From Dicyema japonicum (taxonomy: Eukaryota > Animalia > Dicyemida), in NCBI GenBank assembly GCA_011109175.1, contig RDEW01000021.1, forward strand, positions 780,405 to 828,130: a stretch of DNA of 47,726 nt, written 5' to 3'. The position numbers were made by a program, and so were the translations under genes. Below, in pieces: positions 94-35,884 of this stretch. Numbering within the stretch: position 1 is the stretch's first letter; each line of letters begins with the position of its first letter. The notes under the pieces are model-generated. The model made no database searches. It was not told the origin of the DNA and was given only the letters and a program-made list of their open reading frames with translations.

Positions 94-159
94 GGCGTCA
101 TGCGGTTCACCTGTTGTTGTGGTGGCGCTCAGTGCAAGTTCTGCATGGAAGAGAACCGC
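94..159 (+). ncRNA. HDV-like ribozyme fold (copy L1)
   Basis: P1 GGCGUC(94-99)/GGCGCU(124-129); P2 GCGGUUC(102-108)/GAACCGC(153-159); P3 ACC/GGU; P4 GUGCA/UGCAU. Helix order matches the HDV nested double pseudoknot. J4/2 is GGAAGA and lacks the catalytic C. Confidence 0.65.
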
Positions 160-219
160 TAGACTTTCCCTACCATTCTGCGATCTTCAGATGGGTGGCC
201 TATCAACTCCCCCGTTTTC

Positions 220-264
220 TCTTTACTACTTCTGTCTGGTGATGTAGAACCTAATCCGGGACCC
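220..264 (+). other. 2A-like ribosome-skipping motif SLLLLSGDVEPNPGP
   Basis: Positions 241-264 encode DVEPNPGP, in frame with the endonuclease start MTILQLNVNG at 274. Confidence 0.9.
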
Positions 265-3200
265 AACTGCACAATGACTATTTTACAATTAAATGTAAAT
301 GGAATCCGCAATAAAGTGTTGGAATTACGATCCCTTTTATCCCTTTTGAAAGTGGACATTGCCCTCATTCAAGAATTGAAGCTCTCTATAAAGTCCCCAA
401 CACCTTGTTTTCCTGTGTACTTCGCAGGGACCGAACAAGAAGTCTCAGAGGAGGATTATTGACTATCGTTAAGGATGGACTCAAATTTACGGATGTCACT
501 CCTTCTGTATCTTTTCTCTGCGAATGGGATCTTATTCTGGAACAGATTTCCTTTTCTCCGAAGAGATGTTTTACAATGTGTAATGTCTATATCCCGCCTC
601 AGGGGTCATGTACTACTTCCTACATCCCCAACCTATTGCGACTGTGTGGACTAAAGGATCTGCTACTATACGGAGACTTAAATGCCAAACATCCGCTCTG
701 GCTCCCAGGGGTCATGTAGTACTTCCTACATCCCCAACCTATTGCGACTGTGTGGACTAAAGGATCTGCTACTATGCGGAGACTTAAATGCCAAACATCC
801 ACTCTGGGTTTGGACACAATCAGTCGACAATCGTGGAGAGTACATCCTATCTATACTCGACGGATTAATTATTCTCAATAATCCGGATTCCCATACGAGG
901 ACCTTCAATCCGAAGAGGGGATAGCCCAACTTGCCCAGACTTGTCATTATACACTCCCTCCCGTGCTGGATACCTTACATGGGATGTTCGTTATGGTTTT
1001 ACAAGCGACCATAACCCAATTGTATTGAAACTGATAAGATCTATCTCTGCCAAGATGTTCTACAAAGTTCAAGAACTATTCGAAGTCAAATTGGTTTGGA
1101 TTCAGCATGAATGTGGATAATTGTCTATCGGGACTCGTTGTAGAAAACTTCTTTATTGAAATGGTAGCCATGATGCTAACTTCAGTTATTCGAAAAGCGG
1201 ACAGAATATTCATCCCAATATCCTCTTACAGAAAATTCAATCCGAAACTATCTTCGGGCATCCTGGAACTTATCAAAAAACGGGATGCTTTGAAGAAAAC
1301 CGGAATGAATTCAGATNATTCGAAGGCAAATTGGTTTGGATTCAGCACGTGTGTGGATAATTGTCTATCGGGACTCGTTGTAGAAGACTTCTTTGTTGAA
1401 AAGGTAGTTATGATATTAACTTCAGTTATTCGAAAAGCGAACAGAATGTTCATCCTAATATTTTCTTACAGAAAATTCAATCCGAAATTATCTTCGGGCA
1501 TCCTGGAACTTATCAAGAAACGGAATGCTTTGAAGAAAACCGGAATGAATTCAGATGGCTCTATATCGTCCATATGCTCTCTAAATTGCAAAATTTTCCA
1601 ACTAATCCGTGATAAACACAGACACAAATGGAGTCGGCTTGTTGGTCGACTATGCCACAAGAACTCGTGTGGAACTTTCTAGAAGACACTAAAGAGTATC
1701 AACAGCCTCACAAAGGAAGATGACGGCGGAGTGGAAACCGTTACCCTTGCCCCGGAACATGCACGGAAACTCGCTAATAACCTCATGAAATTCTGTGTCG
1801 ATCAACCACAAGGACTTCTCTAGATCTCTGCATGTCAAACGAGATAGTCCACAACAGTCGATATATACGACGTTCTTTACTCCCTACAACGTGGAAAGGA
1901 TTATTAAATATCTGAAAAGGAGCCTGTGGCCCCGACGGTGTCTGTGCTATCCACCTTAAACACCTAGAACCTCAGGCTCATATTGTGTTATCAAGACTAT
2001 ACAACCAGTCTATAAATTCCCATACGATACCAAACATATGGAAGAACTCATTGATTAATCCAATCCTCAAACCTGGAAAATCAAAAGACATTCCATCCTC
2101 TTACCGCCCTGTCTTTATAACTTGCGCCTTGTCAAAAGTGTTGGAGAAGCTTGTACTAATGTTAATTACCCCTGTTCTACAATTTCTTGATTTTCAACAT
2201 GGCTTCAGATCATGCCGTTTTACAACAACGCATTTAAGATCTGTCTCTCAGTTCATCACAGACGGCTTCAACATGAAGACGCACTTACTGACGGCTCTGG
2301 TGTCTATAGATATACAGAAAGCCTTCGACTCGGTTTCGAGGACTCTCCTAACAAAGAAGATCTTTAACTCAAATTTACATCCGAGCATCATGCTATGGCT
2401 GAAAGACGTGGAAGAGTCCGGATTGGAAAAATTACTTCAAAATCAAGACTACTCCCTAATGGGGTCCCACAAGGCTCCCCTCTGTCTCCTTTCTTATTTA
2501 ACTTATTTCTACACGATTTACCTACTATCAATGATCAGGACACCATGTTTTTATCTTATGCGGACGACCTGATTATCGCTGCAAGGGACAAATCTCCCTC
2601 CAGGGCTGTGGCGGTGGTTCAGTCACACCTCAACCAGGTGTTGACTGGTTATCCATGAATTTGCTGTCTGTGTCTGCATCCAAGTCTCAGTTCACGCTAT
2701 TTACTACGGACAGAAGATTTAAAGATGGACTTGAGATATTCCTCGGAAACATTCCTATCCCTTATACATGAATCCAGAAGATCCTTGAAGTAACTTTCGA
2801 GTCTCTGATGACGTTTGCCAGTCACAAAGAGAAGATGTTAACAAAGGGTCTTCGAAAATGGAACGTTCTAAAAACCATCGTAAAGAAGAGCCCCTTCCCT
2901 CCTACTGCTTGGATCAGCAAAGTATATCTTCAAGTTATTGCGCCGACGATTGTATATGCCTGTTCTGCCTGGAGATTCGCCATTCCTTCTACGAGGTTGG
3001 AGCGTATGAATTCTCTCAGACGGAAGATCATGAGACACATACAAATCAGACTCCACATTCGTCCCCAGTCTGCTTTCAGAGGAGGCGACGGTGAGAAATG
3101 CCTGGGCTTCCTACGTATGTGCAATGAGCTAGGAAACCCATTCAGAGAGAGGGTGGTTCATGCGGAAGAATTCAGATCGCCATTAAATAAGTGCACTCCG

Positions 3201-4989: not shown

Positions 4990-6970
4990 GTGGCATCATG
5001 TGGTCCACCTTTTATGGTGACGCTGAGTGACTCTATGCACAAAAAAGGACCTGCACTTTTCCCCATCTGGAGTCATCTTCAGACTACAACCCTGCTCCCT
5101 CAGCCTCCTCTGGACAAAAGACCTAACCTTACTACTTGCCGGTGACGTAGAGCAAAACCCAGGGTCGCAACGACAATTCTACAGCTTAACATCAGAGAAA
5201 AAATTCTCGAACTACGCGCTTATCTGAATAAACAAAATGTGGATGTGCAGCAACTCAAGAGACCAGATTGACGCCTACCTCAACTAGTCCTTTTTTCCCT
5301 GGATACAACTGTATCTGTTTGGACCGGTTGAACCGGAAAGGCGGAGGCCTCATGTTCACCATTAAGATTAGGTTACTGTATACTGACATCACAGATGACC
5401 TTTCGAAGTTGAACAACCTAAGGAACCTGATTATTTGTCGAGATTTAAATGCCAAACACCCAACTTGGCTAATATCACAACGGGTTGACTCTAGAGAATC
5501 GCCAATGTCGATCCTCAACAATCCGAAGACCCATACGAGGACGCCCTACAAGGATAATGAATGTTATACCTCTCCGGACCTTACACTTTGCTCTACTAAC
5601 CTAACTTCAACCATTTCATGGTCTGTCGACTATGACCTCAACTCCGGTCATAACCCAATCATCATCGGAATCAAGAAAGCCTTTCCTCCCATGAAAGAAA
5701 CTATGTCATTCTTCAACTATAAGAACGCAAACTGGAGAGATTATACAACTTTCACAGACATAATGCTACAAAATTTGGACACCAATATATTCAAATCTAT
5801 TGACGGAGCTGTGAAAAANNNNNNNNNNNNNNNNNNNNNNNNNNNNNNNNNNNNNNNNNNNNNNNNNNNNNNNNNNNNNNNNNNNNNNNNNNNNNNNNNN
5901 NNNNNNNNNNNNNNNNNNNNNNNNNNNNNNNNNNNNNNNNNNNNNNNNNNNNNNNNNNNNNNNNNNNNNNNNNNNNNNNNNNNNNNNNNNNNNNNNNNNN
6001 NNNNNNNNNNNNNNNNNNNNNNNNNNNNNNNNNNNNNNNNNNNNNNNNNNNNNNNNNNNNNNNNNNNNNNNNNNNNNNNNNNNNNNNNNNNNNNNNNNNN
6101 NNNNNNNNNNNNNNNNNNNNNNNNNNNNNNNNNNNNNNNNNNNNNNNNNNNNNNNNNNNNNNNNNNNNNNNNNNNNNNNNNNNNNNNNNNNNNNNNNNNN
6201 NNNNNNNNNNNNNNNNNNNNNNNNNNNNNNNNNNNNNNNNNNNNNNNNNNNNNNNNNNNNNNNNNNNNNNNNNNNNNNNNNNNNNNNNNNNNNNNNNNNN
6301 NNNNNNNNNNNNNNNNNNNNNNNNNNNNNNNNNNNNNNNNNNNNNNNNNNNNNNNNNNNNNNNNNNNNNNNNNNNNNNNNNNNNNNNNNNNNNNNNNNNN
6401 NNNNNNNNNNNNNNNNNNNNNNNNNNNNNNNNNNNNNNNNNNNNNNNNNNNNNNNNNNNNNNNNNNNNNNNNNNNNNNNNNNNNNNNNNNNNNNNNNNNN
6501 NNNNNNNNNNNNNNNNNNNNNNNNNNNNNNNNNNNNNNNNNNNNNNNNNNNNNNNNNNNNNNNNNNNNNNNNNNNNNNNNNNNNNNNNNNNNNNNNNNNN
6601 NNNNNNNNNCAACCGTCTTAAAGTTGATAACACCCTATGTCGAGCTCCGACTACCATAATGCACATCGCAAAGCTGAACAATATTCTAACCAGTCTCTTT
6701 GACCACTTTATCAAACAAAATGGTAAGAGTTTTTTAACCTTAACCCTCCAACCGTACCTGTCGTCGACAGACCGTCCTGTGTCAAGCAGTTTCCAGAAGC
6801 ACATCACCCCAATTGGTTTTCTCACGAACACTGTCCCCCACCCGTACCGTGACTGTGTTGGGTCAAAAGTCCAACATCGGGAGAAGCTGAGAAAGCTCAT
6901 CAGGATTGTCGGGATCACCTAATTAAATTCAAAAGATTAATTATTAATGTTTTTGGGTTAGTAATAATAA
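4990..6970 (+). mobile_element. Degenerate Ingi/Vingi-like LINE copy 2 (gap at 5819-6609)
   Basis: HDV-like head and LLLAGDVEQNPGS. Endonuclease motifs CRDLNAKHP, SPDLT and GHNPI. ORF end VGIT* followed by a TAA-rich tail at about 6955-6970. Confidence 0.85.
4992..5054 (+). ncRNA. HDV-like ribozyme fold (copy L2, degenerate)
   Basis: P1 GGCAUC/GACGCU, P2 GUGGUCC/GGACC, P3 ACC/GGU. P2 covaries with copy L1 (GGUUC/GAACC versus GGUCC/GGACC). Confidence 0.55.
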
Positions 6971-12084: not shown

Positions 12085-12252
12085 CTCAATCGGATTCCTC
12101 TGCAAGGATGAGAGAAGGCTCTTTCGTACAGTAGTGGGAACAATGGAAGAAGACAGACGTTGGACGAGTCGATTGTTTTTGGGAACTGGGATTACCTAAC
12201 TGTCTGACGTTTTTTCCGTTTTTCTTTCTCGGTGATCCCGGGGTTCTTAATA
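12085..12252 (+). mobile_element. 5'-truncated 3' end of the LINE family seen at 24815-25900
   Basis: Aligns by eye to the 24820-24960 minus strand and to 35258-35412. Ends ctcggtgatcccgggg plus a TAAA tail. Confidence 0.75.
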
Positions 12253-12259
12253 AATAAAT

Positions 12260-24814: not shown

Positions 24815-25900
24815 TGATCCCGGTATCACCGAGAAAGAAAGACAAAGTAAAGTCAACTAGTTAGGTGATCCCAGTTCCCGCAACCATCCTAAGCCTGTGC
24901 GTCTTCATTGTTCCCACTGCCGAACGGAAATGCCTTCTTTGATCCTTGCAGAGGAAGCTGATTGGGGAAGGAAATTTCTTAGCCAACCTATTTTCTTTTG
25001 CGTGGAACAGTGAGAGGCTTAGTGAGTGTCCATCTTCCTCGCAAATGCAAAGAAATCCGGAACCACACCTACGAGTTGTAGATTCCGACAGCAGGGGAGG
25101 TATTTTTGTTTCAGTGGTACCAGCATACGTATTGTTTAACTTTGCAGTAAGTTTAGTATTTGGATAGTGGTCTCTGATAACGCGAATCTCAACGCAGCAG
25201 AGGCATATTCCACAAATTATCTGGCGGTATATGGTTCCGATTGCTTTATTCATTTTCTATGGGGTCTTCTAGGTGAGGGCCCATGTGACATTCAAGTTCT
25301 GTAGTCGTTTGGTGAAGACTTGTTTGGTATGGTAGGTAGAATTAAGCAGTCTATCGTATGTCACTCCCAGGATTAGGGGGTTTCTTGTGACAGGTATCCG
25401 AGTATATCCAATGGAGATTTCTGGTTCTTCTTCGGACCGCAGGTCGGAAGTGAATAAAGTGCATGATTTCGGAGCTGATACCGAGAGACGGTTAGCCATC
25501 ACCAATCGTGGATGCAATCCACTTTCTTCTGTGCGAATGAGACTGCCTCTGTTTTCGAACTGCTTCTTGTTGCAATGATGATATCTTCAGCATATGAAAG
25601 CAGTAGCAAGTCCTTGTCAATGTCTGTTGGCAGGTCGTGGAGGATAAGGTTGAATAGATTGGGGGACAAAGACGAACCTTGGGCACTCCGTTTGGTAGTA
25701 ACGTGATCTTGATCTGAGATGGCCACAAATGACCCTCCCACGTCTTCCAGATAAAAAATTGGCCAGCCATAGCTTCAAGTTAGGGCAAATTTTTGAAAGA
25801 TTTTTCCAATTAAATGTTTCCTCGGTACCGAGTCAGCCTTGTTGATGTCGATCAAGACCATTGTAATATCCACCCCCAACTCAACGAATTCAGATTTTCA
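24815..25900 (-). mobile_element. 5'-truncated LINE (RT C-terminal half plus 3' UTR)
   Basis: AQGSSLSPNLFNLILHDLP, SYAEDIIIA and NPLILGVTYDRLL. ORF end GTGIT* and a ctcggtgataccggg stem-loop. Confidence 0.85.
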
Positions 25901-28399: not shown

Positions 28400-30215
28400 A
28401 ATACATTTAATTATTGCTGTAATTATTACCGTTATCTTAAATTGTTAAAGAACATAAGGGAGTTGACTATTTTCAAGGTGGCATCGAGCTCTATGGCTGG
28501 ATCAAAGGGTTCGTTTGCTATCAGCGGCACAAATATGCAGGATACATAGTCCCCCCATTGACGTTCTATCAATAACATTGGGATAAGGGTAAGTATATTT
28601 TTTGGATAAACGAACACCTTAGAACTTATAATTAAGTCAGATTTTCAGCATCCCAAAGACCAAGACGTAAAGAGATGTTTCAGCATCTTCTGCCTACATT
28701 CCCGTAGGGGCCATCAGTTATTAGATCCATGACTAATTTTTCTGGAATCCTTAAAAATCTTTGTCAAGAAGAAGGAATTAAAGACCTGATCTTTAGAAAA
28801 AATCTTCGCTTACCTAGATGATTTTCCGCTCTTATGAATTGGAGTGATGAGCGAGTTCTTCCATATTTGGGGGATAGTGTTCCAGTTAACGGACGGGTTA
28901 AAAATTTCCGTTAGCTAATTGCGTATTTGCTTAGGTGAATTGAAGATACTTTGTCTGGGCCGCAGGCCCGTGAGTTCTTTAATCCGGCGATAACCTTGAG
29001 ACCTGCTTGTCTGAGAATAGTTCTTGGTAAGGTTTATTTTTCGGGTTGTAGGCACGTACTTTGATATCCAGTTGTTTAGAGAATTTTGATAAGCTGTTCG
29101 CAGCGTAATGTTTCATAAGTAGATTAGGGTATATATGTTCTGGAGAGGGGTTACAGGTTCCGTTCGCATACTTATATTTAGTTGTCTGATAGATTTCAAC
29201 TCCGTCGGATGGTATTTTTTCATTTGGTTCCTTCGTTTTATGAGTGTAAGTGTCCGGGAATTGAGGGTAGGTATAAAATTCGTGTATGATGAGAGAGGAA
29301 TAAATATGTTGTCAGCCTTTTGAATGGCCACACTGATGATTTTTGCGGCTTCATCTATCGAACGTATATAGGATAATAGTCCTTTGATCAATTCCAGGTC
29401 TATAAAGTCAGAGAATCCAGGCCAGTCAACCTTTTTATAATTCTTGAAACTTTTCGCTTCGGTCCGCAACGTCCGGCGTCTCCGAAATTCTCTTAACATG
29501 AGAAGGATGGGATTATAGTCGCTGGAGAATCTATAGTTCACATCCTATGTAGTGATTCCTGCTAAAAAAGGTGAACACAGGGTTAAATCAGGAGAGATGT
29601 AGCTATCAATGCTCTTTAAAAGAGTTCTTGTATGTAATTTATGATCATTCAGGATAAACATATCAATAGGATCATTTGCGATGAACTCGCCTCGGGTGTC
29701 AAAGGACTGTGAAGCTAGCCAAACGGGGTGTCGGGCATTTAGGTCACTGCATATTAGAGCGTTCTTTAGTACTGAGAGGCAGGGTATATTTGGGGTGTAA
29801 GATTTTGGGCAGGATACTTGTGGTGGAATATATAGGTTAATCAAGTTGATCCAAAAAGACGAGTATAGCTCCATTTTGATGGTGATCTGCTCCATGGTAT
29901 CGTCTGAGTCCAAAAGTTCTGAGTAGCGTTCTTTAGTACTGAGAGGCAGGGTATATTTGGGGTGTAGGATTTTGGGCAGGATACTTGTGGTTGAATATAT
30001 AGGTTAATCAAGTTAATCCAAAAAGACGAGTATAGTTCCATTTTGATGGTGATCTGCTCCATGGCATCGTCTAAGGCCAAAAGTTCTGAGTTCCGTCGAC
30101 TATGGCGGTGAAAGATACACCGTTCTTTATAATTGTGATTAGTCCTCCACCTGTCTTTCCTGACGGTCCTTACGGATTACTGTGTATCCCGGGAAAGAGG
30201 GTGTTAGCGTGGAGG
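28400..30215 (-). mobile_element. Degenerate APE-RT LINE, 5' end missing
   Basis: FPGYTVIRKDR..GGGLITIIK, CSDLNARHP, YISPDLTLCS, SDYNPI and IPQIWKNSLITPIHKSGK. Confidence 0.85.
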
Positions 30216-30545
30216 ATTTATTTATTTATTAATTTACTCCGGATACACCGAGAAAGAAATTAAAGTAACCAACTAATTAAGTGTATCCAGTTTCCGCTTT
30301 TACAGAAACAGAGTCCATCCGGAATCAACATAAAAGGTTAGACGTCCATTACATGCAGTTGTGGAAACCCCTCCAGTAGAGTGGGGAAGAGCAAATGATC
30401 CTTTTTCATGCCGGCCTGGCGCTGGGCGTCACCTAGACAGGTGAATCACATAACGCCACTCTATTAGGAAGAGAGAAAAGGAACAGACAAGCAAGCAGAA
30501 AATTTAAGCCATTTAACCACGCAGCACCACATGGCGCCACGCGGC
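30216..30545 (-). mobile_element. Short ribozyme-headed element, family B (copy B1, complete)
   Basis: 3x palindrome leader at 30516-30545, pyrimidine tract, HDV-like fold at 30395-30457, a body near-identical to 35694-35884, then the LINE-derived tail and (TAAA)n. Confidence 0.88.
30395..30457 (-). ncRNA. HDV-like ribozyme fold (copy B1)
   Basis: P1 GGCGUU/GACGCC; P2 GUGAUUC/GGAUCAU; P3 ACC/GGU; possible P1.1 UG/CA; P4 GCGCC/GGCAU; J4/2 GAAAAA. Confidence 0.7.
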
Positions 30546-30722
30546 AAAATATCTCAGCTCGAGTTGGTGATTTCGTATAGAATTTAAAAAATTTAAACTT
30601 TAACTAAACTTTTTCGATCTAAATTTATTAATAGTAAATATATATTTTAATAAATAATTAATATTTTATATTTACAGTGGAAAACCAATAAAAAATAGAT
30701 AAATAACGAATATTAAGAAACA

Positions 30723-35693: not shown

Positions 35694-35884
35694 AAAAAAG
35701 GATCATTTGCTCTTCCCCACTCCACTGGAGGGGTTTTCACAACTGCATGTAATGGACGTCTTACCTTTTATGTTGATTCCGGATGGACTCTGTTTCTGTA
35801 GAAGTGGAAACTGGATATACTTAATTAGTTGGTTACTTTAACTTCTTTCTCGGTGTATCCGGGGTTAATAAATAAATAAATAAT
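35694..35884 (+). mobile_element. Family B short element (copy B3, 5'-truncated within J4/2)
   Basis: Near-identical reverse complement of 30216-30406. Starts aaaaaaggatcat and ends (TAAA)n. Confidence 0.85.

Follow-up and report, generated by a model that had tools for sequence, protein, structure and literature searches.

The question raised by this locus is whether the HDV-like folds that head its retroelements are working ribozymes, decayed ribozymes, or structures retained for another role. HDV-like ribozymes are found at the 5′ ends of R2, L1Tc and a few other retrotransposons, where cutting sets the RNA's 5′ terminus. The window, that is, the whole 47,726-nt stretch of Dicyema japonicum DNA analysed here, contains folds of this type in the SINE families A and B and in two LINEs, L1 and L2. 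A sequence-only reading had described the J4/2 strand of B, L1 and L2 as consisting of purines only, in contrast to a cytosine kept by family A, and had proposed two alternatives: that the folds had decayed repeatedly, or that they form a lineage devoid of catalysis whose structure was retained. Our results give slightly better than even weight to a fold that would derive from an HDV ribozyme and be conserved for its structure, with catalysis weak or dispensable. This structural-retention idea fits best, mostly on grounds other than a lost cytosine in J4/2.

B1 lies on the minus strand, runs from 30545 to 30217 (Table 1) and is a full-length member of a SINE-like retroelement family of very high abundance. 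The element is short (~330 nt) and non-coding, with an AUG-UGA inside the fold. Public assembler contigs from four runs (X1, X2, X6 and X5; three from one sample and one from a second sample) were placed on positions 30150–30650 where they were at least 80% alike. Summed word depth was ~1–3.4 million within 30218–30545, 11–32 thousand left of 30218 and 0–330 past 30558. Because repeats are collapsed in such contigs and were weighted by k-mer depth, allele shares taken from them are rough and depth does not equal copy number. Heterogeneous loose ends gathered at 30545 (52 contigs in X1 and 43 in X2), which is the dominant 5′ end of the B family. About 17,000 contig pieces of the family were placed in the largest run, and the ratio of inside depth (10^6 scale) to flank depth (10^2) points to a family size on the order of ten thousand. 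These results agree with the earlier description of B1 as complete (leader, fold and body), its ends lying at the depth cliff.

Table 1. Positions of the B1 parts, of related fold copies and of LINE ends in the window
Feature	Position	Strand	Size	Remarks
B1 leader	30458–30545	−	88 nt	Set by depth edge, loose ends and homology to family A
B1 double pseudoknot, HDV topology	30396–30457	−	62 nt	Covariance model match, 81 bits
P1	30457–30452 with 30430–30425	−		GGCGUU/GACGCC in B1
P2	30448–30443 with 30401–30396	−		UGAUUC/GGAUCA in B1
P3	30442–30440 with 30433–30431	−		ACC/GGU in B1
L3	30439–30434	−		UGUCUA
J1/4	30424–30423	−		CA
P4	30422–30418 with 30412–30408	−		GCGCC/GGCAU in B1, 5-nt loop
J4/2	30407–30402	−		GAAAAA in B1
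B1 body	30291–30395	−	~105–110 nt	
B1 3′ stem-loop tail	30239–30290	−	52 nt	Common to LINEs
B1 A/T-rich, (TAAA)n-like 3′ end	30217–30238	−		Depth falls left of 30218
B3, of the subfamily of B1	35695–35883	+		5′-truncated within the J4/2 A-run; 95% identity over 189 nt
Decayed B-like copy with leader	16302–16472	−		23.6 bits in the covariance model
Family A fold	20612–20674	+		J4/2 TCAAAA; homologous leader upstream
Family A fold	13285–13347	−		J4/2 TCAAA
Family A fold, 3′ strand of P1 deleted	47022–47076	+		J4/2 TACTAAA
LINE L1 head fold	94–158	+		J4/2 GGAAGA, preceded by T
LINE L2 head fold	4992–5052	+		...GCAC AAAAAA..., C directly 5′ of the A-run
LINE 3′ end with the tail stem-loop copied by B	24820–24884	−		LINE 5′-truncated; endonuclease ORF 29545–29913
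LINE L2 3′ end	12186–12262	+		Tail stem-loop and (TAAA)n end

B3 was likewise confirmed as near-identical to B1 and truncated inside J4/2. Loose ends of contigs recur at its start point, 30406–30407 in the A-run (27 contigs in X2); some of these look like copies in which P4 has diverged and not like truncations, and stalling of the reverse transcriptase at the GC-rich P4 is a possibility. In the decayed copy at 16302–16472 the fold is damaged by partial loss of the P4 region, and sequence has also been deleted internally before the tail. B1 adjoins a LINE of the same orientation (24820 to about 30215) at the latter's 5′-truncated head. Since other copies of this LINE diverge at 30217 in the contigs, B1 was inserted in or beside its 5′ region. 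The flanks of B1, inspected by eye, contained no convincing direct repeat (target-site duplication).

The relation of B to the LINEs is visible at its 3′ end. The tail at 30290–30239 forms a stem-loop (z = −3.1; none of 200 shuffles folded as well) and is identical to the LINE end at 24820–24884 at 43 of 65 aligned positions, as the sequence-only reading had noticed. A 14-nt core, TTTCTTTCTCGGTG, is identical in the B tail and in two LINE ends. The 11-bp stem (CUGGAUACACU with GGUGUAUCCGG) differs in sequence between B and the LINE, and pairing is kept by compensating changes. The first ~8 nt of the body (ATTTGCTC) also match the region after the fold in a related LINE. In stringent LINE/SINE pairs, such as eel UnaL2/UnaSINE1, the 3′ end of the SINE copies the stem-loop and short repeat end of its partner LINE, and B resembles them in both respects. 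Typical SINEs carry a pol III head (tRNA, 7SL or 5S); unlike these, B has a LINE 5′ fold in its place. ARAGORN found no tRNA-like head in B, and the leader contains T-runs (TTTT), which would act as pol III terminators. Taken together, the shared tail and stem, the truncated B3, the lack of a tRNA head and the coding capacity of the LINEs indicate that B is a LINE-dependent, SINE-like element carrying both ends of its partner.

The LINEs encode, in a single ORF, a 2A peptide directly followed by an AP-endonuclease and a reverse transcriptase. In L1 the AUG at 100 lies inside the fold (J1/2, fold nt 7–9) and is in frame with the 2A-endonuclease ORF, in which a TAG at 160 is the sole interruption. 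In both copies of the outside locus L008, which belongs to GCA_006345805.1, the ORF is open across the pseudoknot into the 2A and the endonuclease (MWFTFS...GDVEQNPGP; window 100–264, L008 9997–10170 and, on the minus strand, 3153–2960). It follows that translation of the fold gives a disposable leader peptide that is released by the 2A. A start codon in the form of CATG at the P4/J4/2 border was considered as an explanation for the purines, through a coding or Kozak constraint, and rejected, as the majority sequence there is ACG and the ORF starts at the AUG of J1/2.

Several further features of the window were recorded. Tandem duplications of 240 and 167 nt lie in two LINE coding regions (1078–1556 and 29758–30091), and there are many other two-copy tandem repeats of 110–280 nt. 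ARAGORN called a tRNA-like sequence with the anticodon UUA ("tRNA-Stop") at 20988–21063 (minus strand), ~300 nt beyond a family A copy, which is probably a tRNA-derived repeat or pseudogene. An ORF at 45252–45746 (minus strand) had a weak SAM-methyltransferase domain match and is likely a host gene exon.

To characterize the fold, a covariance model was built from six fold copies, and the window and outside loci were searched with it. Seven clear and two decayed copies were found in the window; the matches comprised B1 and the decayed B copy, three folds of family A, and those that head L1 and L2. Beyond the window, a pair of LINE heads was matched in L008, a locus of 21 kb in GCA_006345805.1, which we take to be an Octopus sinensis assembly. 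No fold was detected by the model in four LINE loci from metagenome assemblies (L002, L003, L004 and L009), and scans of metagenome and viral collections with the fold pattern returned chance matches only, in GC-rich contigs. A scan with our own descriptor of the HDV topology proved much too unselective and was discarded. Word-index searches yielded no matches with an N-terminal piece of the LINE and relatives at only ~40% identity with a reverse transcriptase piece, and a search of representative proteins returned many 2A-LINE N-termini.

The fold is a nested double pseudoknot with P1, P2, P3 and P4 in the canonical order and P2 crossing P1, as judged by pair counts and covariation. P1, P3 and P2 are of canonical sizes, and P1 begins with G1 paired to a pyrimidine, namely G1-C in B (GGCGUC/GACGCC) and A and G1-U in L1 and L2. 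In the model alignment, 81% of the cells are standard pairs, compared with 27–44% when the 3′ partners are slid by 1–3 columns. Both-sided changes occur in three of the six P2 pairs and two of the five P4 pairs, a number that 83 of 500 shuffles matched. In the second LINE of the outside locus L008 (3084–3161), P1 is ATCGTC/GACGAT as compared with GGCGTC/GACGCC, amounting to two compensated pairs. P4 varies freely in sequence and length among lineages and remains a hairpin. The weak points of B1 itself are private to it: the U-G wobble at 30452 (P1) is C-G in the family majority (30452 T>C), the U-G wobble at 30444 (P2) is C-G (30444 T>C), and the C×A mismatch at 30421 (P4) is U-A (30421 C>T), with the majority letters each holding 95–99% of family depth. 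As the helices covary and those of the family majority are perfect, the comparison indicates that the fold is maintained as structure in these lineages.

The J4/2 strings quoted by the sequence-only reading are all present when its helix boundaries are used (Table 1), and the J4/2 of B1 is indeed purine-only provided that position 30408, directly 5′ of GAAAAA, is counted as part of P4. At this position, however, C accounts for 59%, 73%, 65% and 61% of family depth in the four runs, and B1 has T; the variant appears as A>G on the plus strand in X1, X2, X6 and X5. L2 also has a C there. The contrast between a family A that keeps the cytosine and B, L1 and L2 that lack it consequently does not apply to L2 or to the majority of B copies, and the B consensus contains a C that is replaced by T in B1 and a sub-lineage. 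The majority sequence reads ...GGCA C GAAAAA GGAUCA, in which C30408 and the next G form a CpG and a C-G-A-A motif; B1 has U-G-A-A here, without a C, and both B1 and L1 have T-G where the majority has the CpG. The LINEs of L008 have GUAU-C-UAAAAA and AGCA-A-C-AAACA at the P4/J4/2 border and family A has U-C-AAAA, so that a C lies within one nucleotide of some drawing of P4 everywhere except in B1 and L1.

One account of these T copies is scattered decay of a CpG, and it belongs to the foremost rival explanation, which we consider rather unlikely. According to this explanation, the C-type masters of B and of the LINEs are working HDV-like ribozymes that cut 5′ of G1, and the T copies lost the cytosine by CpG deamination, with B1, L1 and the others being dead on arrival or aged. 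The frequency of T speaks against scatter and for a founder. T at 30408 makes up 27–41% of family depth in the four runs, 5–7 times the level of decay at other CpGs, where either product reaches at most 6%, and far above the opposite-strand product at 30407 (6%); this frequency is like that of subfamily markers. B1 and B3 are alike at such intermediate-frequency sites (30328, 30335 and 30387, with majorities near 50%, and 30269, with 73%), which places them in one subfamily. At 30259, 30296, 30300, 30339 and 30378 (majority at least 83%) B3 has the majority letter, and the letters of B1 there are therefore private. The T share and the alleles shared by B1 and B3 together imply that a large sub-lineage without the C was amplified, and on the simplest reading a master bearing U at 30408 would have founded about one third of the B family.

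B1 is an aged, decayed member of this U-bearing subfamily, and three further changes, private to it, weaken its helices. The C-G-A-A of the majority, the T of B1 within a CpG and these three defects make B1 an unfair picture of its family. Both halves of the earlier alternative stand in part, since B1 has decayed and a U-bearing sub-lineage has been amplified. The loss of the C looked more general than it is on account of a single old copy and of the point at which a helix was taken to end.

Sequence features that would suit a cleaving master are present. The core of HDV-family ribozymes has been described as G1-Y, a P1.1 of CC/GG, U..CG in L3 and C-R-R-A in J4/2, the last corresponding to C75-G76-A77-A78 in the HDV ribozyme (PMC6326823). 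The majority C-G-A-A at the P4/J4/2 border in all four runs conforms to C-R-R-A; L2 and family A have C-A-A-A, and the L008 LINEs have C-U-A-A and C-A-A-A. U, the preferred −1 base of HDV ribozymes (PMC1874588), precedes G1 in nearly all copies, with G at +1. Given the C-G-A-A, the U at −1 and the canonical helix sizes, residual or even good cleavage is conceivable in C-type masters, and the additional private decay in B1 would be expected of an aged copy.

Position 30408 may belong either to J4/2 or to P4. C30408 can pair with G30422 and may simply close P4. Of nine aligned copies, seven have letters at both places, and in all seven this pair (model pair 48–98) is standard: the three copies of family A have A-U, L2 and an outside LINE have G-C, and B1 and L1 have G-U. 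Pairability in seven of seven copies supports a P4 of five pairs and, in B, a J4/2 that truly consists of purines only, as far as can be judged from a G-C/A-U covariation that represents essentially one evolutionary event. The designers of an artificial HDV ribozyme inserted a spacer so that such a G cannot capture the catalytic C (PMC6326823). That the C faces a G with which it can pair in every copy counts against working C-type masters.

The remainder of the core also departs from the canonical state. The U...C-G reverse wobble of L3 has been described as crucial for catalysis (PMC6326823), and L3 is UGUCUA in B, UUUUAU in L2 and UUACUA in A, with L1 no better. The two C-G pairs of P1.1 are missing as well: B has CA after P1 and UGUCUA in L3, which permit at best U-A plus G-C, and family A has no consistent partner. 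Neither L3 nor the A-run of J4/2 showed a variant at 5% or more of the B family, and the non-canonical L3 is for this reason the state of the family and not a product of decay. Searches with the Rfam HDV, CPEB3 and drz families gave no match to the window or to the isolated folds, either at the gathering score or at E values up to 10. The second L008 LINE (3084–3161), in which L3 is UUCUCGU, GG follows P1 and A-C-A-A-A is unpaired, has a near-canonical core, and through this relative the folds of the window look like derivatives of a true ribozyme.

The leader provides a further argument. Cleavage 5′ of G1 would remove it, yet full-length copies keep the 88-nt leader. The sequence-only reading had attributed this retention to the loss of the C; that explanation does not hold, as family A keeps its C and has a homologous leader. 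Leader depth is ~1.0–1.4 million to 30540 and ~0 past 30558, about 35–50% of body depth. Depth falls by 32–60% across the 5′ edge of the fold, a step that agrees with masters that cut and could reflect many copies starting at the cleavage site. Among the best-supported loose ends of the B-family contigs, no cluster was found at G1. Among the LINEs, L1 (at 81–90) and the GCA_006345805.1 locus have CAGTTTTTAG just upstream of G1, and two marine-metagenome LINEs have nearly the same motif; the templates of the LINEs thus extend past the predicted cleavage site in the upstream direction. Inheritance of both the leader and this LINE motif, which cleavage would remove, weighs against masters that cut.

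Sites resembling CAGTTTTTAG are at 81–90 in the window, 2483–2492 in L001 (GCA_006345805.1), ~283–295 in L003 and ~174–187 in L009. The motif is 3–13 nt upstream of G1 in L1 and in the GCA_006345805.1 LINE and may be an initiator-like start site; in the two marine-metagenome 2A-LINEs that have it, the downstream structure differs. The 5′ part of the B leader (30524–30538, GGCGCCATGTGGTGC) is a diverged duplicate of fold nt 1–15 and is followed by a pyrimidine-rich spacer. The first ~20 nt (30524–30541, minus strand, GCGUGGCGCCAUGUGGUGC) duplicate the three nucleotides before the fold and the 5′ strands of P1, J1/2 and P2, and "E-box palindromes" in the leader are pieces of this duplicate. An alternative, long-range P1 made with the leader's version of the P1 5′ strand would move the cut site to the 5′ end of the element. 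This possibility was unsupported, because it would put P2 and P3 ~75 nt apart and would still leave seven inherited bases upstream. In the L008 LINE head with the near-canonical core (3084–3180, minus strand), a 16-nt direct duplication of its own P2/P3/L3 (GGTTCACCTTCTCGTG) precedes the fold; by its sequence it looks like a template jump at the 5′ junction, ending at the start of P1.

A second rival explanation is that the fold is a working ribozyme with a different active site, in which an adenine of the A-run or another group is the general acid and L3 is remodelled. The invariance of L3 and the A-run across the family and the persistence of the fold in lineages both with and without the C would suit it. 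Against it, changing the C to G abolished activity in a designed HDV ribozyme (PMC6326823), and the inherited leader and the lack of 5′ ends at G1 speak against efficient cutting of any kind; we regard this explanation as very improbable. Least credible of all is that no RNA structure is selected and that the likeness to HDV is a by-product of conserved 5′-end sequence (a promoter, or coding for the LINE leader peptide), for although pseudoknot-free folding energies are unremarkable (z = −1.2, +0.7 and −0.8), the fold lies within the LINE ORF and the shuffles noted above reach the observed both-sided changes, lineages differ by compensation on both sides in three P2 and two P1 pairs, P4 is wholly different in sequence and length and stays a hairpin, sliding the partners by a single column makes pairing collapse, and non-coding SINE families retain the fold.

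Known systems offer partial parallels. The LINE of the window resembles L1Tc/NARTc and ingi/RIME of trypanosomes (Pr77, L1TcRz) in having a single ORF, an AP-endonuclease, an N-terminal 2A, a 5′ HDV-type fold and a short non-autonomous partner with the same head (PMC3185411, PMC3383444, PMC3708506). In the related SIDER elements the fold persists and activity is lost (PMC4035085). The L1Tc ribozyme starts at nucleotide +1 and cleaves in vitro, whereas the SINE folds of B and A are preceded by an inherited leader; moreover, the folds of the window have a non-canonical L3 and P1.1, and their host is an animal. R2 and the SIDEs derived from it are similar to B in that a 5′ HDV-like ribozyme and 3′ sequences binding the reverse transcriptase are kept in internally deleted dependants (PMC3414825). 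R2 is, however, site-specific in rDNA, has a restriction-like endonuclease and is cleaved from a 28S co-transcript, and unlike its SIDEs, B is dispersed and has its own leader and a unique body. With HDV and CPEB3, B shares the helix order P1-P2-P3-P1′-P4-P2′, a P1 of 6–7 bp starting from G-C/U and a 3-bp P3, and its majority shares C-G-A-A after P4, as in C75-G76-A77-A78 (PMC6326823, PMC4908430). It differs from them by the lack of U..CG in L3 and of CC/GG in P1.1, by a C opposite a G, by a longer J4/2 with six residues past the C, and by the absence of an Rfam match.

We therefore return to conservation for structure, which fits the covariation in P1, P2 and P4, the non-canonical L3 and P1.1 in all window copies, and the inherited leader. 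On this proposal, B would be a non-coding, SINE-like dependant of the single-ORF LINE (2A peptide, AP-endonuclease and reverse transcriptase). Its 3′ stem-loop and (TAAA)n, copied from the LINE 3′ end, would presumably be recognized by the LINE reverse transcriptase for target-primed reverse transcription. Its head would be a copy of the LINE 5′ end, a nested double pseudoknot that appears to descend from an HDV-like ribozyme. The catalytic core seems degenerate, with an L3 of UGUCUA lacking U...CG and a P1.1 lacking CC/GG, and the only cytosine near J4/2 (30408) would face a G and be replaced by U in about one third of the family. Self-cleavage is probably weak or absent and not needed for amplification. 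The fold might act as a structural 5′ module that binds the LINE protein for second-strand or 5′-end steps; alternatively, it might serve the start of translation in the LINE, where the AUG lies inside it. By analogy, protein recruitment for 5′ integration steps or LINE translation start is the likely role, and the R2 5′ RNA and ribozyme-assisted translation form the basis of the analogy. Ribozyme-assisted translation is treated in PMC4908430.

More tentatively, and with rather less than even confidence, we propose that the fold is an exapted former ribozyme. Having lost its core, and with a dispensable cytosine, it would be a selected 5′ module of an animal LINE, located within the first ~20 codons upstream of the 2A. 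SINE families numbering about ten thousand copies would have acquired it because LINE-mediated mobilisation or expression requires it in cis. The degenerate core, the inherited leader and the large sub-lineage without the only candidate catalytic C set these elements apart from the known cases. If confirmed, these elements would represent a natural case of a fold that has outlived its chemistry, in which other roles of the pseudoknot, such as protein recruitment or translation start, would be testable.
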